Assembly: GCF_052425735.1 (NCBI RefSeq) | Contig: NC_135768.1 | Coordinates: 16,430,001 to 16,494,000, forward strand | Source of the DNA: Oculina patagonica | Taxonomy: Eukaryota | Length of the DNA: 64,000 nucleotides | Direction: 5' to 3' | Part shown: one piece after another, positions 38,027 through 62,569 of the stretch | Numbering within the stretch: position 1 is the stretch's first letter | How the letters are laid out: every line of letters begins with the position of its first letter | Translations under genes and position numbers: made by a program | The notes under the pieces: generated by a model | Seen by the model: the letters and a program-made list of their open reading frames with translations, nothing else | Databases searched by the model: none | What the model was told of the DNA's origin: nothing

Positions 38027-40238
38027 ATGGAGTCTCTTTTAGAAAACCTCAAACAACGTCTTACCTGCTCGATTTGTCTCAATATCTACGACGAGCCCAA
38101 AACTATATCATGTCTTCACACATTTTGCTGTGAGTGTCTGTCGAATCATGCAAGAGCAAGCCACAGACAAGGAAAATTTTCTATGTCCAGAATGCAGAGC
38201 CGAAATCGATTTACCCGAAGGAAATCGCTTCAAAAGTTTGCCGAGCAGTTTTTTCCACAACAGTTTGTTGAGTCTCCTTGCTGTTCGACGGAGTGGCGAT
38301 GGAAGTAACATTACTTGTTCCCAATGTCGAAAGGCCAACTCCCAGATGTTCTATTGTTTTGACTGTGGACGATTTATGTGCCCAGACTGTAACAACGCAC
38401 ACGAAATGTTAAAGGATTCATTCGAAGGGCACAAAGTCACGCCAGTGAAGGAGTTTAAAGCAGAAGATTACGAAGCCTTGCTGAAGCGACAACCATTTTG
38501 CTCGCAGCAGTTCCACGAGAAAGAAATCACGAGATTCTTTTGCTTTTCGTGTCAAGCTTGTGTTTGCCAAATTTGCATTGTCACGGATCATCGGAATCAC
38601 GAATTTCTTTTACTCGACAAAGCAGCCCATGACGAGAAACCCAACATCATGTCGGGCGCTAAAATGATCGAGGAAAAGATAAGAGAGATTGGTGAAGTGA
38701 TTCGACAATTTGAAGAAACGATTTCTAAGCTGGAAAACAATGTCACAACAGCTAAACGTGGAGTCTCGCAAGCTGCTGAACAAATGATCGCAAAGATTCG
38801 AGAGCGCGAGCGAGAGGCGATTGTATCACTCGAGACTACACGCGTGACGAGACTCAAGAGAATTGACTCGGCTATGCAGGAAGCGCAGTCCCTGGTCAAA
38901 CAAATGAAACAAGCGGTCTATTTTGCTAAAAATCTGGCAGAGAGAAGCTCTAGCTCAGATATCATGCAAAACAAGGAAACTTTGAAGCAGAGATTTGAAG
39001 TTCTGCGTGCAGTTGAAGTTCCTAAACATGACGAGACTTCATTTATCAAGTTTACTAAGGCTTCTCTAGAGGACTTGAAACTGGGTTTCATTGAGACCAC
39101 TGCAAAGAAGGCAGAGGCAAATCGATCTACGCTTGAAGGAATGGATCAAACTCTTCAGGCTGGTGTAGAAGCAGAGTTTACGTTGTGCCTCAAAACATCT
39201 GAAGGGAAGCTGAGTAACCAGGCTGATCTTAAAGATCAAGTTAAAGTTCTGATAGAACCTGCTAAAGATGTAACAAATGTGATGGTTAGCGAGAAAGAAG
39301 ACGGTAATCTGCAACTGAAGTTTATTCCGAAAGTACCAGGTGCTTACAGCATTGAAGTTAAGATCAATGGCGATAGACTTCCGACCTCTCCTTTTACTAT
39401 GCAGGTGAAAGAACGTAAACTTGTTGTAGTTGGAGAGTTGGACTTAAAATTCTTTCAAGGAGATAGGCCCCAAGGGTTATATGGGATCGCTATTAACACA
39501 GACGGAAAGATGGCTGTTATAGATAACAAAGGACACTGTGTTTATGTGTTCGATAACGAAGGCAACTGTTTAAGGACAGTTGGCAACCATAGATCAAATT
39601 CTGGACAATTTAACTATCCTGCTGGCGTTGTGTTTTTAAACGACAACGAGATTCTAATTGCAGACGAACTGAATCATCGAATACAACAAATAAATATCCA
39701 AACAGGAACTGTTGTAAAATGCTATGGAAAACGCGGTGCAGAAAAAGGAGAGTTAAAGAATCCACTTGATGTTTGTTTGGATGATGAAGGACACATGGTT
39801 GTAACCGAGGGCGGTAATCATAGGATACATGTGTTGTCAAAGGAAGCAGAAACTGTTTTCAGATTTGGAGACAGTAGCCCAGAGAAACTCGACCATCCAA
39901 CTTGCTGCTTTCCTTACAAAAACATTTTTCTCGTATCAGATAGATACAATAACTCAATTAAAGTTTACGATCAGTCAGGAACTTTTATGTACAAGTGTGG
40001 AACACAAGGGATTCAAAACGGACAATTTAACTTGCCGTGGGGTATGCTTGTAGACAGGTCCAATAATCTTCTTGTATGTGATTTTAAAAATGATCGAGTT
40101 CAGCAATTTTCTTTAGACGGTCGCTTCACAGGCAAAACTATCACTGATGTACCTCGTCCTGTTGGAATAGCAACAGCACCAGATGGACGTATTCTCGTCA
40201 CTAACTTTACAGCTAGGAAAGTATTTATACTGAAGTAG
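38027..40238 (+). CDS. TRIM-NHL E3 ligase copy 1 (TRIM2/3/71-like), intronless; +1 frameshift near 38173-38180 (probable assembly error, otherwise pseudogene)
   Basis: MESLLENLKQRLTCSICL..C3HC4 RING, two B-boxes, coiled coil, filamin repeat (PGAYSIEVKING), six NHL blades. The extra base in AAAATTTT is evident from alignment to copy 3. 736 aa if corrected. Confidence 0.85.
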
Positions 40239-41201
40239 ATGTTTAAGTTGTCCGTATTTGTAGTCGGTAGTCCTGTTGTGAAATGCGTCGTCTCTGTGAT
40301 GACACTTTTGTGCATTTTATTGTCTTGAAGCTAAATACATACATACATCACCATAATTTAAACCTAGGATTGCATGAGTAGCTGTTGTATGTTGAATGAA
40401 TGTTTCTATATGGCGATAAATAACCAAATAATAATGTAGACCAATGTAGTAAATAGCATGGTTATCATAATATTGTATTGTTTACGTTTGGAAAAGACGA
40501 ACTCATGTAGAACACATGTTTAAAAGATCAATTATTTGAATTTTTGTTACCTTCCGTGCTGCTTTAGAAACCAATATAGAAGTTTCTTGCAGCTCAAGTA
40601 GTTTGATGTCTGTGAAATAAGAAATATATATTCGTATTTTTTTTACCAGAAAAGTTTCGAAGCTCTGTTGTTTGCTAAGTCCATCAAAATTGTCACGGCG
40701 GACAATTTGAAAGACAAATTCTTCGTAGTATCAAATTGCGGTGATCAATGTATATAAAAAAGCATTTTTAAATATATTCCAATGGGTAAAAACATTTTTT
40801 GTTGCCTTTTTGAAAGAAGCTATTATTACTTGTCAGCCTCTAAGAAGACTTAGATGTGTTCGCTTAGTACAATCTGATTTTTATTGTTAAACTATTTTAG
40901 TATCTTTGAATAAAATAGTCTTAAAATTGCTCAAGCCAACTTTTTAACTACCCTGTTGCCTAATTAAACTTGAAAGCAAACACTATTTGGGTGAGTGAAT
41001 GAGTTGTACAGGCAAGACTGTTGTTTCCCATGATATTAGTCTCAACAGCGCGCTTTCTGTAGGATGTCCTGGGTCAGCTGTTTAAAAGTTTAAAAAACTC
41101 CCAGAAAACCGCAAACTACTCAAACAATGTAAGCTTGAAAATGAAATTACAGAAATTATATCGACAGCAAAAGGGTTCATGAATTGTCCATCAAAATTTT
41201 G

Positions 41202-41435
41202 CAGTGCTCGCAAAATTAGGCTTCTGCTCGGAATGCTCGCAAAATTTTAGTGAGTGCTCGTTTGCTCGTTGTCGCATATTTTTACAAGTGTTGGCATGCT
41301 CGATATTTCGGAGAGGTAGCGTTTTCAAAAGTGCTCGTTGCTCGCAAGGCTAGCTTTTATCAATGCTCGTGCTCGCAAAGAAAAACGCTCTGCGCGAATG
41401 CTCGTAAATTCTCGCAAAACCATTCGATACCCCTA
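41202..41435. mobile_element. MITE fragment with TGCTCG repeats (hAT-like end CCCCTA)
   Basis: About 10 copies of TGCTCG(C/T); ends TTCGATACCCCTA. Confidence 0.5.
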
Positions 41436-41979
41436 GCAATAAAATAGTCGTCATTTAGAAGAGTTCAAGTTCTACATTTTCCTATCTACAATCAAACGCG
41501 AACATCGGTAAGCGGAACTCGTTTAAACTCAGTTGTCCTGCATTCCAATGAAAAGCATCGCACAGATAGTCCTGGTGACGAGATTGTTGTTTTCCATGAT
41601 CTCGACCGAAACTGCGCATTCCTTTTTAATTCTTTTTTAATAGGAAAGAAAAAAATAAACGCTACGCAACTGCGGCATGCAGAAGCGATGACGTTTCCCA
41701 ATTTTGTTTTAATCATTTTTAGAGGATTTGTAACGTTAATAAAGTGGCTGACAGCTTCTGTGTTGGATGATTGTTAAACGAAAGTTGCGTTATCTTGTAG
41801 CTTGACATCCGACATACGATGTACGATACTCCTTGCGAGCGAGCAAGGTCACAGGCTGTCTGCATGATCTCGCAACTGTTTACACATGCCCATTGTATTA
41901 AAAGAATGTAGAGATGTCGCTCTTTTTACTGAATCTAATAGAACTCATCAAATATAATTTGTCTCTTTCGTTTACACTT

Positions 41980-42330
41980 AACAATTAGATTACGAGCCCG
42001 AGTTTTCTATAAGCAAATACTCAACGAGAGGCGCAGCCGAGTTGACTAACACTCATAAAAAACGAGGGCGATTAGTCTAATTGTTTTATTAGTATAAATC
42101 TACCAGCGTTCTATCATTAATCCTGTTCTCTGATTGGCTACGCTACTCACTATCTATTCTGTTGTAGAAAGTGAGTAGCCAAATAGCGTGCATTTGTCAA
42201 CAAAATGGCGGCCGCTTCTTTGCTTTTCAAATTGTCTGTGAAGAAGGACTTGGATGATTTATTATTCGAGGCGATTCCGGAGAAAACAAAGACTGCAACG
42301 AAATATGTAATGAAGAATTTACACGGTAAG
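41980..42330 (+). mobile_element. Crypton-like relics: terminal foldback plus first coding exon remnant
   Basis: About 110-bp hairpin AACAATTAGA...TCTAATTGTT at 41980-42085. ATG 42205 opens MAAASLLFKLSVKKDLDDLLFEAIPEKTKTATKYVMKNLH then GTAAG donor, resembling N-termini of DUF3504/Crypton proteins (from recall, not searched). Confidence 0.45.
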
Positions 42331-42596
42331 AAAACGATTTGAAATTAAAGTTCAATGATTTTTATTATTCATTTACGTTTTTAAAAGCGGGTGAGTTTTA
42401 TAACATTCGGAGATGCGTTTCACCGAGACATTCTGTGGAAATTAATTTTAAAATGGTTTGCAATCCAACACAATTTCATCGACCCCATCGAGGAGTAGTG
42501 AAAGAAGTGCAAAACAGATTGAACTTGCAAGTTTTTTATGCATCAATAAATTAAGCAACAAAATTGAAAGCGAATTCAAGGTTTTTTTGCTTGCGG

Positions 42597-43032
42597 GCGA
42601 CTCGTTCAACTTTTCATAAACTTCTAATAGTTCACGTTTTCTAGATTTAAAACAACTTGACTTCCAAAGGGCCTTTATTAGTCAGTATATCTTTCAGTTG
42701 TCATTTTATAATGAAAATCCTGCATTTTCTTTCAGTTTCGAGCAAATGACAATTTAAAAAATTCGTGAATGAAATGCAAAGGCGCACACAAAAGCTAAAG
42801 CAATGTGGTCTCATCCTTGCGAAAAACTCGTTCAACCTTTCAGAAATTTCTAATTTTAAGTTTCCGAATTTAAAAAAAAAATTGTCTTCCAAGGGCCCTT
42901 GTGCGTCAGTACATCTTTCAATCATCAATTTACAAACAAACTTGGCTTTTCCTTCAGTTTCGAGCAAATAACGGTTTCAATAAATCGTGAATGAAATTCA
43001 AACGCGCACACAGAAGCCAATGCAATGTGGTG
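42597..43032. repeat. Two diverged ~220-bp tandem units
   Basis: ACTCGTTCAAC...TTCAGTTTCGAGCAAAT...TCGTGAATGAAAT...GCGCACACA...GCAATGTGGT present twice. Confidence 0.8.
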
Positions 43033-43221
43033 CAGTTGTCAGTTATCACCGTGTGGCATGACAGTATTTATATCATTATCCAATTAAAACAAGAGCCTGT
43101 CTTGCTGTAAAGTTTTAAACGTCTAGTAGATTTATATAGTTATTAGTTTTGGATTCGTGGGTAAAGGATTTGTGTTTGGGTGCAATTTTCGATAGATATC
43201 GATAAGGTTCAATTCGTTCAT

Positions 43222-44350
43222 AAGGTTGCTATCTGAGGTTAGCATACTGACCTCGTGCTAGATTATTCTGTCTGAATTACTTAGGTGGTAAGTTCCCTAC
43301 GGAACTCACTTTATTATGAGGAACCATATTGAGCTTGTGCTGGATAATTCCGTCTTACTTTTGGTGGTGAGTTCCTTATGGAACTCATGTTATTTGAAGA
43401 CAGCATACTAACCTCGTGCTGGGTTATTCTCTGATCTTGGCCTTGTGCTAGATTATTCTGACTCACTTACTTGGGTGGTGTGTTCCTTATGGGATTCATG
43501 TTATCTTAGGGCAGCAGATTGACCTCGTGCTGGATTATTCTCTCTTACTTGTGTGGCGAGGTTCTTATGGAACTCGCGTTGTCTGTGAGCAGCATATTGA
43601 CCTCGTGCTGGATTATTCATTCTTACTTTGGTGATGAGTTCCTTATGGAACTCATGTTATTTGAGGGCAACATATGTTATGTGAGTTCCTAATGGAACTC
43701 ATGTTTTTTGAGGGTAGCATTTTAACCTCATGCTGGATTATTTACTCTTACTTGGGTGGTGAGTTCCTTATAGAACTCACGTTATGTGAGGACAGCATAG
43801 TGACCTCGTGTTAAATTATTCTCTCTCACTTACTTGGGTGGTGAGTTCTTTATTGAACTCACGTTATCTAAGTACACCATATTGACCTAGTGTGGTGAGT
43901 TCCTTACGGAACTCAAGTTATCTGAGGGCATCATATTGACCTCGTTCTAAATTAGTCTCTCTGGTAGAGAGTTCTTTATGGAACTCACGTTATCTGAGGA
44001 CACCTATATTGACCTCGTGCTAGATTATTTGTCTGACTTATTTGGATAGTGAGTTCCTTATAGAACTCATGTTATCTGAGAACCGCATATTGACCTCGTA
44101 CTGTATTATCCTGTCTTATTTACTTGGGTGGTGAGGTCCTTATGGAACTCATGTTATCTGATCGCAGCATATTAAGCTAAAATACCTAAAATCCTAAATC
44201 ATGCGAAATTTTGCTCGTTTCAGGTTGCTTTTGCTCCATAAATTGAAGTTACATGAAAAAAGCGCATTAGGAAGAAATTTGATCTGTTCTCTTAACCACC
44301 TACTAGATTATTCTATCTTACTTTGGTGGTGAGTTCCTCTATCGAACTCG
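43222..44350. repeat. ~80-bp minisatellite with a palindrome in each unit (13 palindrome copies)
   Basis: GTGAGTTCC-TTAT-GGAACTCAY at about 43288, 43367, 43478, 43556, 43634, 43681, 43759, 43841, 43895, 43967, 44049, 44131, 44329. Confidence 0.9.
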
Positions 44351-44709
44351 GATTTTCGAAAAATATCGTGATTTGTCAGTGTCTCGCATTGATCTTCTCG
44401 CCACCAACAAATCACGTTAATTTTCTCAAACTTCTTCAATAATTTCATCAAAGTATCTTGTTTCACCTATTAATTTTCAGAGCAACCGGGAAAATGTAAG
44501 AAAAGAGAAAGGACGAGCAAGTCTATACAGTGGACTGGGGAGAGAAAGTGCATGTTCGTCTCCAGTCAATTCTTGTTTTCCCAATTCACCTCCTTCAATC
44601 TTTCAATCTCGCATTTATTACACGCGAGAGAACAACCTTACCTCACATGAGAAGTTAGCAAAGCTATAGTGGTTGATCATTTTCAGTATCCCTCCATTTG
44701 TTATAAACC

Positions 44710-44835
44710 TGACTTTGTTTCCGTGAAATCTTAAATACATCCCTTCCGGCGGTTGTTTCGTTTCCTAGACAGTGGTGTGTCGGCAATGGAGTCCCTTTTG
44801 AAAAACCTCAAACTAATTACGTTTAATTACTTCGT
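44710..44835 (+). pseudogene. Relic TRIM-NHL 5' end (promoter module plus first 9 codons)
   Basis: ATG GAG TCC CTT TTG AAA AAC CTC AAA (MESLLKNLK) at 44786, identical in protein to the start of copy 2, then similarity is lost. Confidence 0.75.
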
Positions 44836-45403
44836 AAGTCAAAATTTTCAAATAGTTTAATTGTCTAAAAACAAAGCTCTCAGCAGGTTACGTTCTTGCA
44901 TTGATAACATGAAATGGTTGAACACGCTTGTTATTAAGATTTGATTTGCTACAAGCAGACAGCTGCGAAAGAAGATAATTCTGTTTTCTTGAAAACTGAA
45001 ATAACTTCTTGAAAGAATACTGTTTCAAAGTCTTAGTTAGCGATAGCTACCTTTGAAGTTCCTTTCTGTCAATAACGTTACACAGTTTAATGAAATCATA
45101 ACTTGCAAATTTTAAATGGTTTAATTGTCTAAAAATAAAGCTCACAGCAGACTACGATCATGCATTTATAAACATGAAACGGATGAACAACTACAACTAC
45201 AACTACACTATAATTAAACTTACATCGTTAAACTTCTTCTCAGCGGGATGATGGCGAGGTGAACGGACGTGCCCCGAGCTCTCTCCTCAAATTGTTTATC
45301 AATGTGCTTTTAAAAACGTGATATTGCTTTCTTCCTGTGTTTATGACCTTAAAGAGGCGAATGAGTATCAAAACCAGGTCTAAATAAAAAAAAAGGGAGC
45401 GAA

Positions 45404-46177
45404 ATGTCAGTAATTGACTCGTCTGATAAACTCGACTCTGTCCTGACCAAGATGGACGCCAAGATGGATGACTTATTAGAGGCGAAAGTCGAACAAGAAA
45501 GAAAGCTTAACTCTATACTGCAGAAATTAGAGAATCTTGAAACAAGCCAGAAGCAGACTGCCGAAGACGTCAAGAATTTGAAGCAAGGCTATGGTCTTCT
45601 GGAGGAACAAGTCACTGAAGTCAAAACCGACATGGCAGAGAAAGCGTCCCGCGTGGAGTTAGCCACACTCGAGAAGAGAATTGACGACCTTGAAAACCGA
45701 TCTAAAAGGAACAATGTAGTAATATGGGGTCTAAAAGAAGAAACAGAAAAGGGATACGATTCCCTAGAACTCTTCTTAGCGCATCATCTCTTCGAAAACC
45801 ATATGGGAATCAAAGACATCGAAGTAATGAGGGCGCATCGTACAAACATAAAGGAACGTGCTGCGACTGCAAAGGCAACACCGAGACCAATTCATGTTTA
45901 CCTTCTAAGGTACACGGATAAAGTGAAGATCTTAAAAGCTGCTTCCAACGCTCTTAAAGAAAAAGAATTCCACGATTGCCAAATCTTTATTTCAGACGAC
46001 GTAACAAAGTCGGTGCGCAAAGAAAGGGCCAAACTACGAAAAGATTATCTAAATGAAATCAAGCAAAGAGAAGAAGTGGATTTCGCCTTTATTCCTTGGT
46101 CGGTCCCGGCGCAGATATTATACAAGAAGGTTTCTTCTACAAAGCTATCATCCTTTAAACTGCCAAACGATGAGTAG
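45404..46177 (+). CDS. LINE ORF1p (coiled coil + RRM-like, L1-type)
   Basis: Heptad coiled coil then DDLENRSKRNNVVIWGLKE, RAHR, PRPIHVYL, IFISDD. Confidence 0.88.
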   Translation: MSVIDSSDKLDSVLTKMDAKMDDLLEAKVEQERKLNSILQKLENLETSQKQTAEDVKNLKQGYGLLEEQVTEVKTDMAEKASRVELATLEKRIDDLENRSKRNNVVIWGLKEETEKGYDSLELFLAHHLFENHMGIKDIEVMRAHRTNIKERAATAKATPRPIHVYLLRYTDKVKILKAASNALKEKEFHDCQIFISDDVTKSVRKERAKLRKDYLNEIKQREEVDFAFIPWSVPAQILYKKVSSTKLSSFKLPNDE

Positions 46178-46541
46178 TCACTCAAACAATTGCTTGAACT
46201 ATTGAACTGAACTGATTTGTGCTGTGATGGACAATTTGAACGCTCTCTCAGTTGAAACAAACTTTTAAATATTTAATATGCATATCATGTAAACTGGCTT
46301 TATTCAAAGGAGATCTCGGCGAAAGCGTGTCTTGAACCGCAATGGTAAGTGCGCTTTCGTTATTGTGTGTAACCAATGTGTGTGTCATGTTTTGTGTTTG
46401 TGCTGTGTTTAATGTTTCTGTGTTTATAAAATTCCACATATCTTGCCGATTACAAACATATCAATTGCTCAAACATGTTAATTATTGTAATAAGTTTTCG
46501 ATAAGTCTCTCATGGGAAAAATTTCTGAAAATGGTATATAG

Positions 46542-49500
46542 ATGACAAATGCTAAAACTAAGTCCGACAGCCTGAAATTGCTGTCTCTTAACGCGAGAGG
46601 CCTCAGTTATTTTCGAAAACGCAGAGCTATTTTCACCTGGTGCAGAAAACAAAAAGCAGACTTAATATTTCTTCAAGAAACTCATTCAACAGAAGCCGGC
46701 GAGTGTAAATGGAAAAAAGAATGGGGCTCTGAAATTATTTTCTCCCACGGGAGCTCCAATGCCAGGGGTGTTGCTGTATTAATTAAGAGGGGTCTTGATA
46801 TTGTCATTCAACAGGAGCTTCTAAATTCTAATGGCAGGTCGATTATACTAAAGGCATTAATTAAAGATAAAAGATACATATTGGCCAATATTTATGGTCC
46901 TAACAAAGATGCAGAGGCAGTTCGATTTTATCAAAATTTGTCGGCAACATTACGAAAAATGGATGCTGATAGTGATGATAATATTGTTGTAGGCGGTGAT
47001 TTTAATTGTCCTTTGAACCCGACTTTAGACAAAAAAGGTGGAATATTAATTCCACGGCAACATGTCATTAATTCGATAGAAAATGTTCAAAACGAATTCA
47101 GTCTTCATGATATTTGGCGCATCAAAAATCCAAACACCCGCAGTTTTACATGGAGCAGAAACCATCCTTTTATCTTCTGTAGACTCGACTACTGGCTGAT
47201 TTCAGACAAGTTGAATGATTTGGTCAAGCAGGTTGATATTCAGGCTTCAATTAAAACCGATCACTCATCAATAATATTAGAACTAGAAGATATCAAAGAA
47301 ACCCCAAGGGGACCAGGTTTTTGGAAATTGAACACCTCCCTTTTGGCCAGGCCTGATTATGTTGAGATGATAAGCAAAGAACTGCCTAATTGGCTGAAAG
47401 ATGCAGAGGATTTGTCAAATAAGCGAGCTAAATGGGACTGGCTTAAGTTTAAAATCAAGTCGAGTTCTATTGCTTACTCAAAAGAAATATCAAGAGATCG
47501 AAAAGGAAGAGAAGAAGAACTTAACTTAAAATATCAAGCCTTGCTTAAAATATTTCAGGAAAACCCTTGTGAAACAACAAGACAAGAAACTGAAAAGGTT
47601 AAAAGTGAATTGGAAGCACTATACGATGAAAAAGTAGAGGGAATTATCATACGATCCAGAGCAAGATGGCACGAGCATGGCGAGAAAAATAGCAAATATT
47701 TTTTTAAATTTGGAAAAGCGGAATAATATAAAGAAGCATATCCGGAAACTATTCGTGAGTGGTGCTATTACCACTGATCCTTTCGAAATATTAAATACTG
47801 AAAGGCGGTTTTACGAGAAGCTTTACAGTAAACAAAATACTAATGTAAATAGTGATGAAGCGAATTCCTTTCTTAACAATCCAGACTTATTAAGACTCCC
47901 TAAGGAATTAAGTGAAAGCTGCGAGGGAGAAATATCTCTTCAGGAATGTGAAAATATATTAAACACTTTTCAAGCTGGAAAAACGCCTGGCAATGACGGA
48001 ATCCCAGTGGAATTTTATAGAGCATTCTGGCCTTTATTAGGTAAATTTATGGTGGACTCTTTCAATGAGGCTTATGACAAAAAAGAAATGTCTCACTCAC
48101 AAAAACAGGCTATTATCACACTTATCGAAAAGAAGGGAAAGGACAGAAATTATTTGGAAAATTGGAGACCAATATCTTTGATTAACGTTGATGCAAAAAT
48201 TGCTTCTAAAGTAATTGCAGCTAGAGTCATTAAAGTCCTCCCGGAAATAATTCATTGTAATCAGACGGGATATGTAAAAGGCAGGTTTATTGGTGAAGCA
48301 GCTAGATCTATTATAGATGTTATGGATTATACAAAGAAGGAAAATGTACCAGGTATATTGCTCTTCGTTGATTTTGAAAAAGCTTTTGACAGCATCGATT
48401 GGGAATTTATGTTAAAATGTTTAGACGTGTTTGGTTTTGGACCTAGTATAAAAGGCTGGATAGAAACATTCTACAAAAATATAACCAGCTGCGTTATAAA
48501 CAATGGAATGTGCACATCTCACTTTGAGATACAAAGAGGAGTCAGGCAAGGAGACCCGTTGTCACCCTATCTTTTTATTATTGTTGCTGAAGTTCTAGCA
48601 ACTGCTATTCGAAGTAAACCAAATATTCAAGGTATTAAAATAGGGAAAGAGGAATTCAAAATTGTACAATATGCTGACGATCTTACCGCGTTTGTCCCGG
48701 ATGTCGATAGTGCACAACATATCTTTGTTTTGCTAGATCAATTTGAAAAGTGCTCTGGTTTGAAGGTCAACTACACGAAAACTGAAGCTATGTGGATAGG
48801 CTCCTGTCGAAATAATACAGCGGCGCCCCTTGGATTAAAATGGGTCAACACTGTTAAAGCACTTGGAATAGTTTTCACATATAATGAAACCGAACAGTTG
48901 CAGAAAAATTTTTACGATAAATTAAAAGGTATTCGGTTACAGACACGGCTGTGGCGCTGCAGGGGCCTCTCGCTGCTTGGCAAAATTACCATTATTAAAT
49001 CTTTTTTTGCTTTCGAAAATGAGTTATGTGTTCTTAGTTTTGCCAACTCCGCAAGAGTTTATAAAGCAACTCAACACTATTATACATAACTTCCTGTGGA
49101 ATGGATCTGATAAGATAGCCCGATTAGCAGCAATTAATGACATAAAATTTGGGGGGCTTAGGTTAACAGATATTGAGACGTCGATTAAATCATTAAGATT
49201 AGCCTGGCTAGGAAGAATTTTTTCGTCGGGCCGGACTCCATGGAAGGCCTTTATTGACCACCTGCTGGATAACTACGGTGGAATTTTTTTTGTTAGGTGT
49301 AATTATGATATTAAAGATTATAACTTCTATTCCATATTTTATAATGAACTCCTCCAATGGTGGGATGATTTTAGAAACTTTTTTTCTACTACGTCTCTCA
49401 CTTCCGAAAATATAATCTGGAACAATAAGCTTATCAAAATAGACGGCAAGAGCATTTACTACCACAATTATGTAAAAGCAGGAATTACTTCAACTAGCCA

Positions 49501-50315
49501 GATGCAATTCAATAAGGGCAATGTAGAGTCATACAATATTGCAACAAGTGCTGGTTTGAAACACTCAAAATTTTTTAACGTGGTCAGGAATTAGAAGTGC
49601 AATTCCTGGCAACTTAAAAGTTTTGGATGTTGATGGTAATAAAATCGGTTCATTAGAATTTTACTGTGGGGAAAAACCTTTCGATCCCTTATTATGTAAA
49701 AGTAAACAATTTTATGAATTACTTATTACAAAAAAGGCAATAGTATCAAGGGGTTTTACGAAGTTGAAAAATGCTTTTGGTTTAGATGACAGTACAGTGT
49801 CAAAGGTTTTTCTTAATTTGTTGTCTGTTTCATCGGAAACTTTTGTAAGAAGCTTTCAGTTTAAACTTCTAAATGATATTGTTTTTACTAATAAGCGACT
49901 AGCTAAAATAGGTTATGTTCCACATGATACCTGTACGTTTTGCAAAGTTAACCCAGAAACTGTATATCATTTATTTTACGATTGCCCTCTGACTCGTTTC
50001 TTTTGGGAAAACTTTGAAAACTTCTGGTTTGTACTGTCTGGCCAACGTGAGAAACTCACGTTACAAGATGTATTTATTGGTAAATTAGAAAAATGCGAGT
50101 TGTTAAACTATCTTATAACTCTTGCAAAATTGCATATATGGCTTAGCTTAAAACAATCTAAAATTCCAAAGTGTGAAGTATTTATAGAACTAGTTGACCA
50201 AAAATACAGAACCGAGAAATATATTGCTGTAAAAAATAATACACAGAAACAATTCCAGGCTAGGTGGCAATTATATAGGTGGTACTTATATATAATTAAT
50301 AGTTTACAAAATTAA
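46542..50315 (+). CDS. LINE ORF2p (APE endonuclease - reverse transcriptase - Cys knuckle), split by three +1 homopolymer frameshifts; about 1256 aa if corrected
   Basis: SLNARGL, FLQETH, GGDFN, RLDY, TDH (endonuclease); WRPISL, DFEKAFDS, GVRQGDPLSP, YADD (RT); CTFC..ETVYHLFYDC. Frameshifts near 47699-47705, 49002-49008 and 49567-49576. Confidence 0.92.
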
Positions 50316-50561
50316 TAGCTTACAAAAATTAATATACTTATATACTCTATAATAGCTTGTGAGAGTCTTTGTAAACACTTAATGTATTGTAATGTATTTT
50401 CAAAATGGCAATAAATATGTGGAAAAAAAAATAATTAAAAACATTTCTGAAATTTGATTGGCGCCTAGCAGACAGTGGTGACGTTAATTCATTCCCTTTT
50501 CTCAGAAATTAAAATATTGAGGTGTTTGTGTTTTACAAGCTTTACGGAGCGACGCCTAGTG

Positions 50562-52775
50562 ATGGAGTCCCTTTTGAAAAACCTTAAGCAGCATCTTACC
50601 TGTTCGATTTGTCTCGATATCTACAACGAGCCCAAAACTATATCATGTCTTCACACATTTTGCTGTGAGTGTCTATCGAATCATGCAAGAGCAAGCCACA
50701 GACAAGGAAAGTTTCGTTGTCCGGAATGCCAAGCTCTAATCGATTTACCCGAAGGAAACCGCTTCAAAAGTTTGCCGAGCAGTTTTTTCCACAACAGTTT
50801 GTTGAGTCTTCTTGCCGTTCGACGGAGTGGCGATGGAAGTAACATAACTTGTTCCCAATGTCGAAAGACCAACTCCCAGATGTACTACTGTTTTGACTGT
50901 GGACAATTTCTGTGCCCAGACTGTAACAACGCGCACGACATGTTAAAGGCATCATTCGCCGGGCACAAAGTCACGCCAGTGAAGGAGTTTAAAGAAGAAG
51001 ATTACGAAGCCTTGCTGAAACGACAGCTATTTGGCTCGCAGCAGTTCCATGAGAAGGAAATCACGAGATTCTTCTGCTTTTCGTGTCAAGATTGTGTTTG
51101 CCAAATTTGCATTGTCACCGATCATCGGAATCACGAGATTATTCTACTCGACAAAGCAGCCCATGACGAGAAAACCAACATCATGTCGGGTGCTGAAATG
51201 ATCGAGGAAAAGATAAGCGAGCTTGGTGAAGTGATTCGAAAGTTTGAAGATACGTTTTCCCAGCTGGAAAACAATGTCGGAACCGCTAAACGTGGAGTTT
51301 CGCAAGCTGCTGAACAAATGATTGCAAAGATTCGAGAGCGCGAGCGAGAGGCGATTGTATTACTCGAGACTACACGCGTGACGAGGCTCGAGAGAATTGA
51401 CTCTGCTATGCAGGACGCGCAGTCCCTTGTCAAACAAATGAAACAAGCGGTTGAGTTTGCAAAAAATCTGGCAGAAAGAAGCTCAAGCTCGGATGTCATG
51501 CGGAACAAGGAAACTTTGAAGCAAAGATTTGAAATGCTGCGTGCAGTTGACGTTCCTAAACATAACGAGACTACATTTGTCCAATTTACCCCGGCTTCTG
51601 TAGACGACTTGAAATTGGGTCTTATTGAGACTACCGACAAGTACAGGGCAGAGGCAAATCGATCAACGCTTGAAGGACTGGATCAAATTCTTCAGGCTGG
51701 TGTAGAAGCAGAGTTTACGTTATGCCTCAAAACATCTGAAGGCGAGCTGAGTAACCAGGCTGATCTCAAAGATCAAGTTGAAGTTCTAATAGACCCCGCT
51801 AAAGATGTAACAAATGTGATGGTTAGCGAGAAAGAAGACGGTAATCTTCAGCTGAAATTTTCCCTGCAAGTACCGGGCGCCTACAGCATTGAAGTGAAGA
51901 TCAATGGCGATAAACTTCCGACTTCTCCTTTTACTATGGAGGTGAAAGAACGTGAACTTGTTGTAGTCGGTGAGTTGGACTTAAAATTCAATCAAGGAGA
52001 CGTGCCCCAAAGGTTACATGGGATTGCTGTTAACAGGGAAGACAAAATAGCTGTGACAGATAACCATGGACACTGTGTTTATGTCTTCGATAAAGATGGC
52101 AATTGTTTAAGGAAAATTGGAAAACAAGGATCAGCTTCTGGACAATTTCAGCACCCCACTGGCGTTGTATTTTTAAACGATAACGAGATTCTGATTGCAG
52201 ATCAACTGAATCATAGAATACAACACATAAATATCCAGACAGGAACTGTTGTGAAAAGTTTTGGAAAATGTGGAGCAGGAAAAGGAGAGTTTAAGAATCC
52301 ACTTGATGTTTGTTTGGATGATGAAGGACGCATTGTTGTAACCGATTGCAGTAATCATAGGATACATGTGTTGTCAAAGGAAGGAGAAACTATTTCCATA
52401 TTTGGAGACAGCGGCCCTGAGAAACTCAACAATCCAAGAAGCTGCATTGCTTACAAAAACATGTTTCTTGTTTCTGATACAGACAATAACTGCATTAAAG
52501 CTTATGATCAGTCAGGAAGTTTTATGTACAAATTTGGAACACAAGGGAATCAAGACGGACAATATAACTTGCCGTATGGTATGCTTGTAGACACGTCCGA
52601 TAATATTCTTGTATGTGATTACAAAAATATGCGAGTTCAGCAATTTTCTTTAGACGGTCGCTTCACAGGCAAAACTCTCACTCATTTACCAAATCCTGTT
52701 GGAATAGCAACAGCACCAGATGGACGTATTCTCGTGACTAGCTATACAGCTAAAAAAGTATACATATTGAAGTAG
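50562..52775 (+). CDS. TRIM-NHL E3 ligase copy 2, intronless, 737 aa
   Basis: Intact ORF with the same architecture as copy 1; B-box2 first Cys replaced by Gly. Confidence 0.92.
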   Translation: MESLLKNLKQHLTCSICLDIYNEPKTISCLHTFCCECLSNHARASHRQGKFRCPECQALIDLPEGNRFKSLPSSFFHNSLLSLLAVRRSGDGSNITCSQCRKTNSQMYYCFDCGQFLCPDCNNAHDMLKASFAGHKVTPVKEFKEEDYEALLKRQLFGSQQFHEKEITRFFCFSCQDCVCQICIVTDHRNHEIILLDKAAHDEKTNIMSGAEMIEEKISELGEVIRKFEDTFSQLENNVGTAKRGVSQAAEQMIAKIREREREAIVLLETTRVTRLERIDSAMQDAQSLVKQMKQAVEFAKNLAERSSSSDVMRNKETLKQRFEMLRAVDVPKHNETTFVQFTPASVDDLKLGLIETTDKYRAEANRSTLEGLDQILQAGVEAEFTLCLKTSEGELSNQADLKDQVEVLIDPAKDVTNVMVSEKEDGNLQLKFSLQVPGAYSIEVKINGDKLPTSPFTMEVKERELVVVGELDLKFNQGDVPQRLHGIAVNREDKIAVTDNHGHCVYVFDKDGNCLRKIGKQGSASGQFQHPTGVVFLNDNEILIADQLNHRIQHINIQTGTVVKSFGKCGAGKGEFKNPLDVCLDDEGRIVVTDCSNHRIHVLSKEGETISIFGDSGPEKLNNPRSCIAYKNMFLVSDTDNNCIKAYDQSGSFMYKFGTQGNQDGQYNLPYGMLVDTSDNILVCDYKNMRVQQFSLDGRFTGKTLTHLPNPVGIATAPDGRILVTSYTAKKVYILK

Positions 52776-52906
52776 ATGTTTCAATCGTCAGTATTTGTAT
52801 TTGGTATCATAGCTGACTCGGTAAATGTTTTGCAATTCGCAGTCTCTGGTTCGACAATATTGTGCATTTTCTGGTCTTACGTCACATTTCATTATGGCGA
52901 TATTTG

Positions 52907-53909: not shown

Positions 53910-53974
53910 CCCAAATAACAATGTGAACAAAACTTGTATATAGTATGATGATGTCATAAATGCTTTCAAATTTG

Positions 53975-55949: not shown

Positions 55950-57499
55950 AGACTATATGGGCTAGTAACCTGGAACGAGTTCCGTTTGCTCGAGGGCATC
56001 ACGCGGATAGTCCTGGTGTCGAGATTGTTGTTTCTCGTGATTTTATCCTAAACTGCACCACAACCATGACTGCACTCCTTGTTTCGTTTGTTGCAAAGAA
56101 AGAAAGAAAAAGGATAGTAGCGATTTAGGGTGAACCATCAGTGATTCAATTAAATCCGAGCAATTAACTCGATTTACCTTTGCTTTTCATCCTAGAAAAC
56201 AACTTTTTGTGGAACCAGCCGGTTGTTACAGTTTTGCCTTCAGTGAAAGGCTCTATAAGTCACGTCAAGTCTTGGAAAATTCGCATATGAAAAGCGCTCT
56301 GTTTGTTTCCCACCCGTATGATTAGCTTAAATATTATTATATAATTATATTTAAAGCTACTCTAAAATTCGAGATGAAATAAAGTCTATGTATGTATGTA
56401 TGTACTCTCATTTAAACCTTCGATTCCCCATCTATACTGATACTCTTGCGCATGTAACACTGGCGAAAGTTATCATCCAGAGAGGATGAGGTTTAGGACA
56501 TAATGCCTCATAGACTTATAGAATGGTACACTTTCGAGAATCCCCATCTAGGCAAGCGAGGAATACCATATGTCAAAGGGCATAGAACAGGGAGACCCAG
56601 TCGGCACCGCTGCGACACATTAAACCTCTTCTGGGACCGGCCTATTTATGTCCTATGGTGGGCCATCTTTAACATCGGCTTCTCCATCAAACACGTTCAC
56701 CATGATATAAAGAATTTTGTAGAATTGCACTTTTTCGCATCACTTTACAGCGCTCATTTTATATATCGACTTCTGCTACGCGAAGGATTAGCCGGCTTCA
56801 GGCTCCATTGCGTTACATTAAAAATTCATAGTGTCCATTCAAGGAAAGCGCTTATGATGTCATGCGCCAAACACGGTCACGAGCACGCGGGAAATTAACT
56901 CCTATCATTGTTTGTGGTTGGAAAGCAAAGCGATTACTTTGGGTCCAGAGATCACGAACCCACATCAAATCTGAAGCAAGAATGAGTTCTGGATCGAGAT
57001 CGGAATACAGTACCTGTTGTTTCATGTCACGTTTGTCACGTTGAATTCGTCACGCAACTGCTAAACAGTGGCATTCGTTGTTCGATTACAAAGCTTATAA
57101 CTTTTACGTGCAGTCGGGAAATTAAAAGCCATTGATGTAAAATCCTCGTTGAAGCACTCGAGGAGCCTCCGAGTTTAATTATCCAATCAGAAACTAACAG
57201 GAGGACAGACAAGCGCTCCGGAAACAGTCACGCCAGTATGGCACCATGACATACGTCATGTTGCTTAGCAACGTTGGCGACAAAAACCGTGGGCTCAGCC
57301 AATACTCGGAGATAGCCATGGATGTAGCGCTTGGTTACTAAGCAACCAGGAAATGGAGTAGAAGTGTATTTTTCAGGCATTAAAAAAATGCAACATTGGA
57401 ACTGTTTTCCTCTGCAAAGCTGTTCTCGTGGCACATTTTTTTTATTCGTATAGTTGACAGTGAATTACTCTGGGCTTAGTTTATGGTGGACGATTTGAT

Positions 57500-57993
57500 T
57501 AAGGCTTTCTACAAGTTGCTCGGGATTTCCCAAAACGTTGCCCGTAATTTCTAAAAAAGTTGCTCAGAAGTTGCCGCAAAAATCCAAAAAAGTTGCTTCT
57601 GATAATAAAAGTTGCGCGAAAGTTGCTCCAAAAAATCCAAAACGAAAATTTGTTAAATGACAAGGTTTTCTGTAACTGAGAAAAATCGTGAAGATATCGA
57701 TGACGTCATGTTTCCTGACGAGTTTTGTAATGTTTTAATGCAGAATGAGCCGAAACATGGGTTGAAACGTCTTCAGATGTTCATCGAAAATCTTCGGCAA
57801 ACTTCTTAAATCTTCGAAAACGTTCGTATGGCCTTTGAACAACACTCGGATAAATTTCGGAGATCTTCGGTCTGGAAATTGCACAAAATGCAACAAGTTG
57901 CTCGAGAGGAAAAAAGTTGCTCGAAGGGGAAAAAGTTACTCGAAATATGAAAAGTTGCCAAAAAAATTGCCGAGCAACTTGTGGAAAGCCCTA
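57500..57993. mobile_element. hAT-type MITE
   Basis: TAAGGCTTTCTACAAGTTGCTCGG ... CCGAGCAACTTGTGGAAAGCCCTA; 8-bp TSD GATTTGAT; empty site in the paralog near 36970. Confidence 0.92.
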
Positions 57994-58393
57994 GATTTGA
58001 TTCGTCACTTTAAACAAGAAACAAACATAAGCAAATACAAAGCTGATCGAAAAGGGAGAATGTGATACCCACAAGTTTTTTTTCGCATGATTGGAATCCT
58101 AAATTGCTCACTGTATCCAAGTAAATATACAGGCAATTAACCTTAACGAATATAGATGCACTGCAAAGGCCGACACAATCAGGCTTGGCTTTTGTATATA
58201 TTTTTTTCTGTGTGGTGCATTTTTTTTTTCTTTTGCTTTTTTGGGGGCCTTGTAAAAATAAACTATTTACTGCGCGAAGTTGAGCAAGACATCTGAAAAA
58301 TGTTCTGAGTCGGGCTTTCCATTAGTACAGAAATTGCATTCAATTACTAGGTTCTAAATTCGTCAGCTATAAATAGCCTTTTAGCTTATCTTC

Positions 58394-58470
58394 CATTCTC
58401 GGCCCAGAGCCCACGACCCTTCTGCTTTGCGATCCCTGGCACCAGAAGGATCGTGGACTCTGGGTAAGAG
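58394..58470. mobile_element. Short foldback MITE related to the 54667 family
   Basis: CATTCTCGGCCCAGAG...CTCTGGGTAAGAGA hairpin; a similar element lies near 17746-17825. Confidence 0.5.
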
Positions 58471-60370
58471 AGAGAGAGGGCTTTTCTTCATAACTCACAA
58501 TACAGAATAAAAAATATGCTGTTCAAAACAACGATCCAAACAGTCAACAATGGCACATTTATTTCATTACCACCCACACTAGTCTTTGCACGCCTTGCGT
58601 ACCTATGTTTCCAAATTCAGACGGTTTGTGAAAATAGCTCTATCATATCAAAACAACTCTCCACGTACATTCATAGACAGAAATGGCACATTTATTATAT
58701 GCAACACAACAACAATCTTATGTTACAGTGCAGGTCAGCCAACCTTTTGAAATTTGAGTGTCAAAAACAGCCAGTGACGTGACGTAAATTGGTTCTGTTT
58801 TCTCGGAATCTGAAATAATACCTTCAGGCTGTTTTCTGTTTTTCAAGAGCTTTACTTAGCAACGACGCTCGGTAACGGATGAAGTTCTTTTTGAGGCCTC
58901 TTACGAAATCGTACCACGATCACATTTAATCGTGCTCGCAATTTTCAAATAGCTAACTTTTTTTGATAAAAGATCTAAGAGGACTACGATCTTGCATTCA
59001 AAATATGCAAAGCCTGAATTACCAAAGGGTAAATTCAAGGGCTTTAAGAACTTTAATGACATCTGATTGGCCACTAGCAGACAGTTGTGACGTTAATTAA
59101 TTCGGTTTTCTCAGAAACTAAACACCTTGGAGGCAGTTGTATTCAGTTTTTCTTAACTGTGTTTCCTTTAGTCTCGATATTAATAGATTACAAAGTAAGT
59201 ACGACTGTCGGAAACAGGATAATACCATGGAAATCAAACAGTGATTGTGAAATGTTTGTCTGGAAATCTTTCTTATTCTTATGTCTAGAAGATTCGTATC
59301 TAGCCAATCAGTGTTCTTTAATGCATTAATCAGTGTTCTTTATTTAGCTTTTAGTGGATATAATCTTTCAGTCTGTCGAGTCAAAGAGTTGTGAAATCTA
59401 GCGAGAATCGAAGAGGAGAAGAATAAAATCTAGTGAAGACGAGACAGTGTGGGCTATCCTTTCTAATTTCCCACACGACAATTTTTTTGCCAGCATAAAA
59501 AGCCTCCCAAAACTCTAATATAGGAAAGACCACAACGACAAACAATGAACAGTGCCGGATCTTTTGAAGACCTGGATCAGTAAAAAATCTTGAGATAATA
59601 CGAAAAATACAGCAAGCTGATCCCTACGGTAAGAAGAAGATATTGAGACAAAAATATATTGGTTTGAGAAATAAAACTTCTACGAGGGAGCTTTGAAACA
59701 TAACAAAACATATTCCGATAGGCAAACAAATGGATTAAATGTTACTAATTTAGTTCATCGCGTCTATTTACACCTTGAGACTCAAGCCGCTTGTCTATGA
59801 GGTGTACCTCGCGTGTCTTTACACGCATTGCAGACCTATGTTCCAAAATAGCATGTTCTTCACACCTCGTAAAACAGTATTAAAATAGCTCAATTTTGTC
59901 AAAACAAAACTCAAAGCAGACAACAATGGCACATTTACTAAATGCATCAAAACAAAAATCTTATGTTACAGTGAAGGTCAGCCAACCTTTTGAAATTTGA
60001 TTGTCAAAAACAGCCTCTCGTGACGTTAATATCTTCTGGTGTAGTTAGCGACGGCACGCGATCACGGAAAATGTTCCTTTTAATCGGGCTTATTTAGAAT
60101 TTGCAACACGATTTCATTTAGTTGTAGAAAGCAAATTTCAAAAAGCGATATTATCTCGATTAAATATCGGAGAAGAGTACGCTCTGGCATTTAAAATATG
60201 GAACGCCTGAACTACCCAAGGTCAAACTCAAGAGCTCAGTGAAAACTTCAACGACATCTGATTGGCCACTAGCAGACAGTTGTGACGTTAATCAATTCGG
60301 TTTTCTCAGAAACTAAAATCTTGAGGTATTTGTGTTTCGCAAGCTTCACAGAGCAGAGCGACGCCTCACG

Positions 60371-62569
60371 ATGGAGTCCCTTTTGGAAAACCTTAAACAA
60401 CGTCTTACCTGCTCGATTTGTCTCGATATCTACAACGAACCCAAAACTATATCATGTCTTCACACATTTTGCTGTGAGTGTCTGTCGAATCATGCAAGAA
60501 AAAGCCACAGACAAGGAAAGTTTTTATGTCCGGAGTGCAGAGCCGAAATCGATTTACCCGAAGGAAATCGCTTCGACAGTTTGCCGAACAGTTTTTTCCA
60601 TAACAGTTTGTTGAGTCTCCTTGCTGTTAGACGGAGTGGCGATGGAAGTAACATTACTTGTTCTCAATGTAGAAAGAACAACTCCCAAATGTACTATTGT
60701 TTTGATTGTGGACAATTTATGTGCCCAGACTGTAACAACGCTCACGAAATGTTAAAGGCATCGTTCGAAGGTCACAAAGTCACGCCAGTGAAGAAGTTTA
60801 AAGCGGAAGATTACGAGGCGTTGCTGAAGCGACAGCCATTTTGCTCGCAGCAGTTCCACGAGAAAGAAATCACAAGATTTTTTTGCTTTTCGTGTCAAGA
60901 TTGTGTTTGCCAAATTTGCATTGTCACGGATCACCGGAATCACGAGATTGTTTTACTCGACAAAGCAGCCCATGACGAGAAACCCAACATCATGTCGGGC
61001 GCTGAAATGATCGAGGAAAAGATAAGCGAGGTTTGTGAAGTGATTCGACAATTTGAAGAAACGATTTCTGAGCTTGAAAGAAATGCCGCAACCGCTAAAC
61101 GTGGAGTCTCGCAAGCTGCTGAACAAATGATCGCAGAGATTCGAGAGCGCGAGCGAGAGGCGATTATATCACTCGAGACTACACGCGTGACGAGACTCGA
61201 GAGAATTAACTCGGCTATGCAGGAAGCACAGTCCCTGGTCAAACAAATGAAACAAGCGGTTGAGTTTGCTAATAATCTGACACAGAGAAGCTCAAGCTCG
61301 GATATCATGCGAAACAAGGAAACTTTGAAGCAGCGATTTGAAGTGCTGCGTGCAGTTGAGGTTGCTAAACAAAACGAAACAGCATTTGTCAAATTTACAG
61401 CGGCTTTGGTAGTGGACTTGAAACTGGGTTTCATTGAGACCACGAAAAAGTGCAAGGCAGAGGCAAATCGATCAACGCTTGAAGGACTGGATCAAACTCT
61501 TCAGGCTGGTGTAGAAGCAGAGTTTACGTTATGCCCCAAAACATCTGAAGGGGCTGATCTCAAAGATCAAGTTGAAGTTCTCATAGAACCCGCTGAAGAT
61601 GTAACAAATGTGATGGTTTGCGAGAAAGAGGACGGTAATCTTCAGGTGAAATTTACACCGAAAGTACCAGGCGCCTTCAGCATCGAAGTGAAGATCAATG
61701 GCGATAAACTTCCTACCTGTCCTTTTACTGTGCAGGTGAAGGAACGTGAACTTGTTGTAGTCGGTGAGTTGGACTTAAAACTCTTTCAAGGAGACGTGCC
61801 CCAATCGTTTTGTGGGATTGCTGCAAACACGGAAGGAAAGATAGTTGTGGCAGATTACAATGGACACTGTGTTCGTGTCTTCGATAAAGAAGGCAACTGT
61901 TTAAGGAAAATTGACAACAAAGGATCAAATTCTGGACAATTTAACTATCCAGCTGGCATTTCGCTTTTTAATGACAACGAGATTCTATTTGCAGATTTCG
62001 GTAATCATAGAACACAACACATAAATATCCAGACAGGAACTGCCGTCAAAAGCTTTGGTAAACCTGGTGCAGGAAATGGAGAGTTTCAGAATCCACTTGA
62101 TGTTTGTTTGGATGATGAAGGACGCATAGTTGTAACCGAGTGGGGGAATCAGAGGATACATGTGTTGTCAAAGGAAGGAGAAACTGTTTCCATATTTGGA
62201 GACAGCGGGCCAGAGAAACTTTGCCGTCCAAGAAGCTGCATTCCTTGCAAAAACATGTTTCTCGTATCTGATACAAACAATAACTCCATTAAGGTTTACA
62301 ATCAGTCAGGAACTTTTATGTACAAGTTTGGAAAACCAGGGAATCAACACGGACAATTTAACTCTCCGTGGGGTATGCTTGTAGACAGGTCCAACAATCT
62401 TCTGATATGTGATAGGTTCAATAACCGAGTTCAGCAATTTTCTTTAGACGGTCGCTTCACTGGCAAAACTCTCACTCATTTACCAGATCCTATTGCAATA
62501 GCGACAGCACCAGATGGACGTATTCTCGTGACTAGCTTTGCAGCTAACAAAGTATACATATTGCAGTAG
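60371..62569 (+). CDS. TRIM-NHL E3 ligase copy 3, intronless, 732 aa
   Basis: Intact ORF with RING, B-box1/2, coiled coil, filamin (5-aa deletion relative to the others) and six NHL blades. Confidence 0.93.
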   Translation: MESLLENLKQRLTCSICLDIYNEPKTISCLHTFCCECLSNHARKSHRQGKFLCPECRAEIDLPEGNRFDSLPNSFFHNSLLSLLAVRRSGDGSNITCSQCRKNNSQMYYCFDCGQFMCPDCNNAHEMLKASFEGHKVTPVKKFKAEDYEALLKRQPFCSQQFHEKEITRFFCFSCQDCVCQICIVTDHRNHEIVLLDKAAHDEKPNIMSGAEMIEEKISEVCEVIRQFEETISELERNAATAKRGVSQAAEQMIAEIREREREAIISLETTRVTRLERINSAMQEAQSLVKQMKQAVEFANNLTQRSSSSDIMRNKETLKQRFEVLRAVEVAKQNETAFVKFTAALVVDLKLGFIETTKKCKAEANRSTLEGLDQTLQAGVEAEFTLCPKTSEGADLKDQVEVLIEPAEDVTNVMVCEKEDGNLQVKFTPKVPGAFSIEVKINGDKLPTCPFTVQVKERELVVVGELDLKLFQGDVPQSFCGIAANTEGKIVVADYNGHCVRVFDKEGNCLRKIDNKGSNSGQFNYPAGISLFNDNEILFADFGNHRTQHINIQTGTAVKSFGKPGAGNGEFQNPLDVCLDDEGRIVVTEWGNQRIHVLSKEGETVSIFGDSGPEKLCRPRSCIPCKNMFLVSDTNNNSIKVYNQSGTFMYKFGKPGNQHGQFNSPWGMLVDRSNNLLICDRFNNRVQQFSLDGRFTGKTLTHLPDPIAIATAPDGRILVTSFAANKVYILQ

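Follow-up and report, generated by a model that had tools for sequence, protein, structure and literature searches.

The coral locus considered here raises the question of whether a family of TRIM ubiquitin ligases holds its enzymatic part constant while the ligand face of its NHL propeller diversifies. The analysed window (64,000 nucleotides of Oculina patagonica, NCBI RefSeq assembly GCF_052425735.1, contig NC_135768.1, positions 16,430,001 to 16,494,000) carries three TRIM-NHL genes on the + strand, c1 (38027-40238), c2 (50562-52775) and c3 (60371-62569), each in one exon, whose products align end to end. These genes appear, from their sequences, to belong to an array of class VII TRIM E3 ubiquitin-ligase genes, tandem and specific to its lineage, in Oculina, a facultatively symbiotic stony coral. 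A sequence-only reading of the same DNA had proposed a constant E3 effector coupled to a variable recognition propeller, with a hint of RNA as the ligand. Overall, the part of the protein from the RING to the filamin domain was found to be under purifying selection, while approximately 20-30 residues of the propeller face were under strong diversifying selection between paralogs. The evolutionary half of that proposal stood, with selection detected in the NHL domain only and on its top-face loops, and the hint of RNA did not.

To begin with the variation itself, all ten residue sets on which the proposal had been built were present at equivalent positions in the three-way protein alignment. 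Following the blade Asp, these were (in the order c1/c2/c3) DNK/DNH/DYN, DEL/DQL/DFG, EGG/DCS/EWG, DRY/DTD/DTN, DFK/DYK/DRF and NFT/SYT/SFA, while the blade starts presented GLYG/RLHG/SFCG, NYPAG/QHPTG/NYPAG, DHPTC/NNPRS/CRPRS and NLPWG/NLPYG/NSPWG. The hypervariable positions fall in two places of each blade: in the B-C loop, the one or two that come after the blade Asp, and at the end of the D-A loop, those at -2, -1 and +1 relative to the Pro with which strand A begins. Amino-acid identity among c1-c3 was 72-76% in the NHL domain versus 82-96% in the RING-C, B-box, coiled-coil and filamin regions, and the earlier description of the RING and B-box as nearly identical was right as to their conservation but overstated, the N-terminal halves being 82-96% identical. 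The synonymous divergence (dS) was the same in every domain, approximately 0.2-0.3, and the ratio of nonsynonymous to synonymous divergence (dN/dS, omega) was 0.54-0.75 in the NHL domain versus 0.25 elsewhere. Therefore, the contrast between domains lies in nonsynonymous change and is a matter of degree, in dN and not in dS. Homogenisation of the N-terminal part by gene conversion, considered as a source of this contrast, was ruled out by the same dS in all domains. Moreover, the NHL domains of the copies aligned with next to no gaps, and at a set of 30 top-face positions (five per blade) 18-23 residues differed between any two copies, well beyond chance. Among 110 full-length proteins of the family, these 30 positions had a mean entropy of 2.93 bits versus 0.83 bits for the rest of the NHL domain (P-value of 3e-18), 22 of them ranked among the 30 columns that vary most in the entire protein, and up to 19 residue types were found at a single position.

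The selection models were applied to a codon alignment of 14 paralogs from two corals, using our own Goldman-Yang implementation (GY94, F3x4) with all branch lengths optimised and naive empirical Bayes (NEB) posteriors. For the whole gene, the comparison of M1a with M2a gave twice the log-likelihood difference (2dlnL) of 97, with omega of 4.0 for 4% of the sites. When the two parts of the protein were considered separately, each on its own tree, no positive selection was found in residues 1-462 of the 14 paralogs (2dlnL of 1.7, P-value of 0.42), while the NHL domain gave 2dlnL of 116 (P-value of 6e-26), with omega of 5.3 for 7.3% of the sites. In the same domain, 2dlnL reached 135 for M7 versus M8, with omega of 4.9 for 8.6% of the sites, and 112 for M8a versus M8. 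As a tree-free control, the Nei-Gojobori omega was calculated at the 30 positions, resulting in 1.6-3.2 among four Oculina copies and in values above 1 for 88 out of 88 pairs with dS>0.05 (median of 2.2). In the rest of the NHL domain, omega was 0.26-0.53 among the Oculina copies (median of all pairs, 0.33), and it was 0.26-0.40 in the N-terminal part. An elevated dN/dS at top-face sites, whose absence the sequence-only reading had named as refuting its proposal, was thus found by both the site models and the pairwise values. Furthermore, a permutation test similar to the pairwise homoplasy index (PHI) yielded a recombination signal in the N-terminal half (P-value of 0.01) and in the whole gene (P-value of 0.002), while no recombination was detectable by this test within the NHL domain (P-value of 0.62). 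The comparisons M1a/M2a and M8a/M8, together with the pairwise omega above 1, ruled out that the positions vary because constraint on them was relaxed.

The distribution of the selected sites over the propeller was established by classifying residues according to the DSSP strand topology of the AlphaFold2 (AF2) model of c2, with a posterior above 0.5 as the cut-off, which left 19 NHL sites. The B-C and D-A loops, which make up the top face, held 15 selected sites among 89 residues, and strand A held four among 37 residues, three of these four sites occupying position one or two of the strand. In contrast, none was found among the 46 residues of the A-B and C-D loops (bottom face) or among the 97 residues of strands B, C and D. 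The Fisher test gave P-values of 0.001 for top versus bottom loops and of 3e-5 for top loops versus everything else. An even scatter of variable sites over the structure, the other outcome named beforehand as contrary to the proposal, was therefore not what was observed, as 19 out of 19 sites fell in the B-C/D-A loops or in strand A. By this topology, the selected residues together appear to ring the top face of the propeller.

The side of the propeller concerned can be compared with that of zebrafish LIN-41, for which Kumari et al. (2018) placed the RNA-binding (‘upper’) surface on the side opposite the filamin domain and listed the RNA contacts. The HMMER alignment to chain 6FPT_A gave a numbering offset of 415, which was checked by identity at C563, R564, R581, S582, R611, K628, D629 and R676; the other six LIN-41 contacts quoted were matched to the blade spacing by numbering only. 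Because of the internal repeats, phmmer alignments to chains of the PDB slip out of register by entire blades, and therefore only the register within a blade was used. The LIN-41 contacts sit at -2, -1 and +1 around the Pro at the start of strand A and at +1 and +2 after the blade Asp, and C563/R564, R581/S582, R611, K628/D629, Y658/W660 and R676 share this register with selected sites of the coral proteins. Among the latter, model residues 125, 127, 171, 219, 265, 311 and 313 lie around the strand-A Pro, and residues 143, 189, 190, 237, 238, 282 and 328 lie after the blade Asp. By this register, the selected positions are those with which LIN-41 holds its RNA ligand.

The chemistry of the face was also considered. 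Over the 14 paralogs, the 30 face positions included 3-8 aromatic or His residues and 1-6 Lys or Arg residues, with a net charge of -2 to +5, and the net charge of the NHL domain as a whole ranged from -12 to +2. Surfaces that bind proteins or other ligands in a versatile manner typically show such a mix of Trp, Tyr, Gly, Ser and Arg. The composition of the variable residues (Trp, Tyr, Phe and His, together with Gly, Ser and Arg, and no strong positive charge) would be no less suited to protein or mixed ligands than to RNA. LIN-41, on the other hand, binds RNA mainly through Arg/Lys-phosphate contacts in a basic cavity (Kumari et al. 2018). The coral propellers are not obviously RNA binders, as far as their residues suggest, because the face is aromatic-rich and not basic, unlike the LIN-41 pocket; the earlier hint of RNA as the ligand was thus unsupported by a face of this charge on a neutral to acidic domain.

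The pattern shared by the three genes, a conserved enzyme half with a diversifying binding face, looks like the signature of a recognition-receptor family. The reading that we favour, with a probability of roughly 0.6, is an array of class VII TRIM ligases with a constant E3 part, in which the ligand face of the propeller is diversified by conflict with fast-changing partners. Under this reading, every paralog would bind a different ligand on its variable face, and the coiled coil, as in other TRIMs, would form an antiparallel dimer displaying two propellers. Binding of the target would then gather the RINGs, leading to ubiquitination of the target or of a signalling partner, as other TRIMs suggest. 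The diversifying force might be conflict with viruses, with transposon products or with microbial or symbiont factors, as proposed from the evolutionary signature and the analogy with TRIM5alpha and finTRIM; by the same analogy, the ligands would be fast-evolving and probably of parasite (viral or transposon), pathogen or symbiont origin. A wider version, which we consider conceivable but on balance doubtful, is that the coral NHL propeller is a germline-diversified intracellular recognition module, like SPRY in TRIM5 or LRR in NLRs, with approximately 30 hypervariable face residues over six blades as its binding site and a constant ubiquitin-ligase head as its output, and that the array is one locus of a large undescribed innate-immune receptor system of cnidarians.

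Several points weigh against the conflict-driven diversification of this array. The codon models were self-written and applied to just 14 sequences of two species, and gene conversion among array paralogs, to which the positive PHI-like test points, can inflate site-model tests. Moreover, the set of 30 positions was not blind, as it was chosen through the LIN-41 contact register after the output of the site models had been seen; the loop-class Fisher test is independent of that choice. The faces were assigned from strand topology and repeat register and not from coordinates, and one of the three copies in the window (c1), as assembled, is unable to make a RING. Furthermore, canonical TRIM-NHL proteins are developmental RNA regulators and not immune receptors, and an innate-immune or anti-transposon role would be drawn from the analogy with TRIM5alpha and finTRIM and from a thin literature.

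The alternative that survives best, though we regard it as unlikely, is that these proteins are post-transcriptional regulators like LIN-41, Brat or Mei-P26, whose propellers were retuned after duplication to different endogenous RNA elements (neo- or subfunctionalisation), no host-parasite conflict being involved. The nearest solved structures are indeed RNA-binding NHL domains, the selected positions coincide with RNA-contact positions of LIN-41, a TRIM71-like gene is under developmental regulation in Acropora, and a fast evolution of the NHL RNA-binding surface was reported by Kumari et al. (2018). However, a face with 1-6 Lys/Arg per 30 positions is not basic, while LIN-41 binds mainly through Arg/Lys-phosphate contacts, and an omega of 2-5 maintained in every one of the 88 pairs, together with as many as 19 residue types at one position, exceeds what a one-off retuning would leave; the copies are also species-specific, with a fast turnover.

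A role in symbiosis management instead of defence, in which these proteins would keep watch on, or control, the intracellular algal symbiont or other resident microbes and the face tracks their proteins, seems to us quite improbable on present evidence. It draws on an NHL-domain gene found in scleractinians only, which shows Ka/Ks>1 when Acropora clades are compared and is induced when larvae acquire native symbionts (Shinzato et al. 2021), and on the expansion of NHL-repeat and B-box orthogroups in merulinid corals. However, the Acropora gene may not belong to this TRIM-NHL family, and no sequence feature favours symbionts over viruses or transposons. Finally, the absence of any adaptive diversification, whether the array is redundant and decaying under relaxed constraint or the variation is an artefact of gene conversion or misalignment, could draw on the c1 frameshift, on two damaged copies in the second coral (one in three pieces, another truncated at its 5′ end) and on the recombination signal in the N-terminal half, but is largely refuted and very improbable, as models permitting omega=1 were rejected in favour of omega of approximately 5, the tree-free omega at the face was above 1 in every pair, the rest of the NHL domain and the N-terminal part are under purifying selection with long open reading frames (ORFs) retained, and the NHL alignment is nearly gap-free.

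Returning to the array with which the favoured explanation deals, the nucleotide identity among c1, c2 and c3 was 84-88%, and c1 and c3 also have flanking DNA in common over several kilobases. A fourth copy (c4) is located approximately 8 kb past c3, outside the window and near 16.5 Mb of the same Oculina chromosome (CM126645.1). In the second coral (contig ENA ERZ25067872), paralogs follow one another at a spacing of 5-10 kb across at least 228 kb, with at least 11 further copies; of those sampled, ten were open over at least 648 codons (one without its 5′ end), and one more was broken into three pieces. The search for related proteins returned at least 1,764 matches below 1e-10 among 8,000 scored candidates, the best named relatives coming from Oculina patagonica (‘E3 ubiquitin-protein ligase TRIM45-like’) and from Pocillopora (a protein that UniRef names TRIM71). 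The tree of the 14 paralogs was star-like and grouped them by species with 100% support, dS being approximately 0.24 within species and 0.30 between species; this pattern suggests that the array evolves by birth-and-death turnover, or perhaps in concert. Besides, the public gene models at this locus are chimeras, which begin at the ATG of one paralog and finish in the next over a span of approximately 12 kb (L001 10001-22439 and 20196-32439, window 60371 onward), though every paralog is a complete single-exon ORF.

Copies c2 and c3 are intact, with single-exon coding sequences of 737 amino acids (aa) from the ATG at 50562 and of 732 aa from the ATG at 60371, respectively, and the c2 protein matches the database protein P0001 at 100%. 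All three copies expected from the sequence-only reading were present and aligned, but the RING of c1 is split by a +1 frameshift, one extra base lying within a motif at 38171-38188. Thus, the frame opened by the c1 ATG at 38027 ends in a stop at 38306, and the long ORF picks up in another frame (38130-40238). The break appears to be either recent or an assembly error, because the lineage-specific ratio of nonsynonymous to synonymous changes (N/S) of c1 outside the variable face (1.14) equals that of the intact copies (0.85-1.39), which also ruled out c1 as an old pseudogene. Protein P0006 was considered as a repaired c1 and rejected for being a separate Oculina paralog; look-ups of P0006 and of a further Oculina paralog, P0073, returned no entry.

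With regard to the domain architecture, Pfam detected the same set in c1, c2 and c3, namely a RING of the C3HC4 type, a pair of B-boxes, one filamin repeat and the NHL repeats, c1 having its RING split as described. In c2, the RING finger (50598-50732, + strand, as are all features of these genes) was recognized by zf-C3HC4 and zf-RING_UBOX at residues 14-56, the same residues as in c3, and it is followed by B-box1 and B-box2 (50847-51152), found as two zf-B_box stretches with an ANCHR-like B-box at residues 97-137. A coiled coil is predicted by AF2 at residues 189-327 (51126-51542), with an unbroken helix at 189-306, whose blocks had predicted local distance difference test (pLDDT) scores of 65-88, mostly 77-88, and then a second helix at 312-327; the zinc fingers of this N-terminal half scored below 50, and the model was used there for the helix only. 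The filamin/Ig domain (51654-51935) matched Pfam Filamin at 2e-11 and had pLDDT of 83-93, and the six-bladed NHL propeller (51957-52772) matched Pfam NHL at 4e-28 with pLDDT of 94, being also supported by Foldseek and the site models. The equivalent propellers were found at 39420-40235 in c1 (Pfam NHL at 1.8e-25 and alignment) and at 61751-62566 in c3 (Pfam and three-way alignment). The AF2 model of the c2 filamin and NHL domains had a mean pLDDT of 94.4, with 24 strands in six four-stranded blades and an N-terminal strand that closes blade 6. Its top solved match by Foldseek was the filamin-NHL part of zebrafish Lin41 (E-value of 5e-30), followed by Thin, TRIM71, TRIM2/3, Brat and Mei-P26. 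The order typical of class VII TRIMs (RING-BB1-BB2-CC-filamin-NHL) was found with every domain in place, namely RING, B-boxes, a long coiled coil (CC), filamin and NHL. In contrast, the Pfam scan gave no SPRY match that would indicate a B30.2/PRY-SPRY domain, the C-terminal domain being NHL, and when the Atlas was searched for related propellers carrying heads other than RING, generic NHL clusters alone came up. The top matches of the AlphaFold DB cluster search carried no names.

Upstream of the genes, a block of approximately 60 bp located 45-115 bp 5′ of the ATG is kept in most of 13 paralogs from the two coral species (with equivalents in L001-L006) and contains an inverted CCAAT box (TGATTGG), GCAGACAG, TGACGTTAAT, the palindromic TTTTCTCAGAAA (TTCnnnGAA) and TAAAAT. 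In the window, it appears on the + strand at 37911-37971 for c1, with the same elements in a TGACGTTAAT-like version, and, by conservation among copies, at 50455-50515 for c2 and 60259-60319 for c3. A 12-mer of the block has exactly four occurrences in the window, every one inside such blocks. This block is probably the shared core promoter. TTCnnnGAA is a consensus of the type bound by STATs; its presence in the block would prove nothing about immune induction. Moreover, an orphan copy of the upstream and promoter region was found at 58711-59143, being 82% identical to 37553-37995 and having no coding sequence behind it, with its TTCnnnGAA palindrome at 59106-59117, approximately 1.2 kb 5′ of the c3 promoter itself.

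Between c1 and c2, a degenerate non-LTR retrotransposon, a long interspersed nuclear element (LINE), occupies 45404-50445, with ORF1 (45404-46177), ORFs for an endonuclease (46542-47726) and a reverse transcriptase (47677-49089), and frameshifted fragments up to 50315. Its A-rich tract stops approximately 10 bp before the CCAAT box of c2, and as a result c2 lacks the upstream block common to c1, c3 and c4. Approximately 600 bp 5′ of the LINE, a lone 28-nt match to the first TRIM-NHL codons (MESLLKNLK) with no gene behind it (44786-44813) may be the remnant of a lost copy. Degenerate tandem-repeat blocks were also found at 14141-15795 and 43227-44179, with self-matches of 66-78% identity at offsets of approximately 200 bp. 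In the array of the second coral, a full-length Ty3/gypsy-type polyprotein ORF of 1,436 aa (L004 19053-22199 / L005 4795-9105) and an ORF with a THAP domain (L002 16427-16948) lie between TRIM-NHL paralogs. Two exon-like ORFs of the window are unrelated to the TRIM array, one with MANEC and KIAA0319 N-terminal domains (31877-33028, - strand) and the other with the start of a protein kinase domain (1563-2024, + strand).

Among known systems, LIN-41/TRIM71 (class VII; 6FPT, 6FQ3) presents the same domain order from RING to NHL as the coral genes and is their top structural match. However, LIN-41 occurs as a single copy whose contact residues are conserved and whose pocket is basic, while the coral genes form a large tandem family in which those positions are hypervariable and not basic. 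The coral NHL domains were just 27-33% identical to that of LIN-41/TRIM71, and orthology was not found, as the contact-equivalent positions are the most variable of the protein, with few Arg/Lys, and the arrays cluster by species with no one-to-one correspondence. TRIM2/TRIM3, Drosophila Thin (TRIM32-like) and Brat also have a six-bladed NHL domain as in the coral proteins (TM score by target of 0.80-0.88), together with a filamin domain in TRIM2/3, but, unlike the coral array, each is a conserved single gene that acts in neurons, in muscle or in development. We know of no report of diversifying selection on TRIM2/TRIM3, Thin or Brat.

With respect to invertebrate expansions, sea urchins have expanded TRIM45/TRIM71-like genes that are induced in phagocytes alongside NLR and RLR genes. 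These genes and the Acropora NHL gene OG0010986 (Ka/Ks>1) bear the same automatic names as the coral genes, any kinship to the family being putative, and the corresponding papers present neither a selection map on the propeller face nor tandem arrays of this architecture. In the literature searched, selection specific to this face was not described for TRIM-NHL genes of any invertebrate, and the nearest published are brief mentions of the Acropora NHL gene with Ka/Ks>1 and of merulinid NHL/B-box orthogroup expansions. What appears to be new is thus a family of TRIM ligases in which an NHL propeller, in place of a SPRY domain, is the part that diversifies.

TRIM-NHL proteins are textbook examples of conserved developmental RNA regulators. 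To our knowledge, in the intrinsic antiviral TRIMs of vertebrates, whose fast-evolving recognition domain is a cornerstone of that immunity, the domain is always SPRY. If the proposed reading is true, the NHL propeller would have been independently recruited as a diversifying receptor surface, with omega of approximately 5 at the ligand-contact positions of LIN-41, and research on coral immunology and symbiosis would gain a concrete receptor family with defined specificity residues to mutate or swap. Primate TRIM5alpha and TRIM22 and teleost finTRIM and btr combine a conserved RBCC part (RING with B-box plus coiled coil) with positively selected surface loops in the C-terminal recognition domain and with lineage-specific tandem expansion. 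The coral genes resemble TRIM5alpha and finTRIM in having a conserved RBCC part and positive selection concentrated in the loops of the recognition domain, although the recognition domain of TRIM5alpha/TRIM22 and finTRIM/btr is B30.2/PRY-SPRY, with a demonstrated antiviral function, while that of the coral proteins is an NHL propeller with a putative recognition role.

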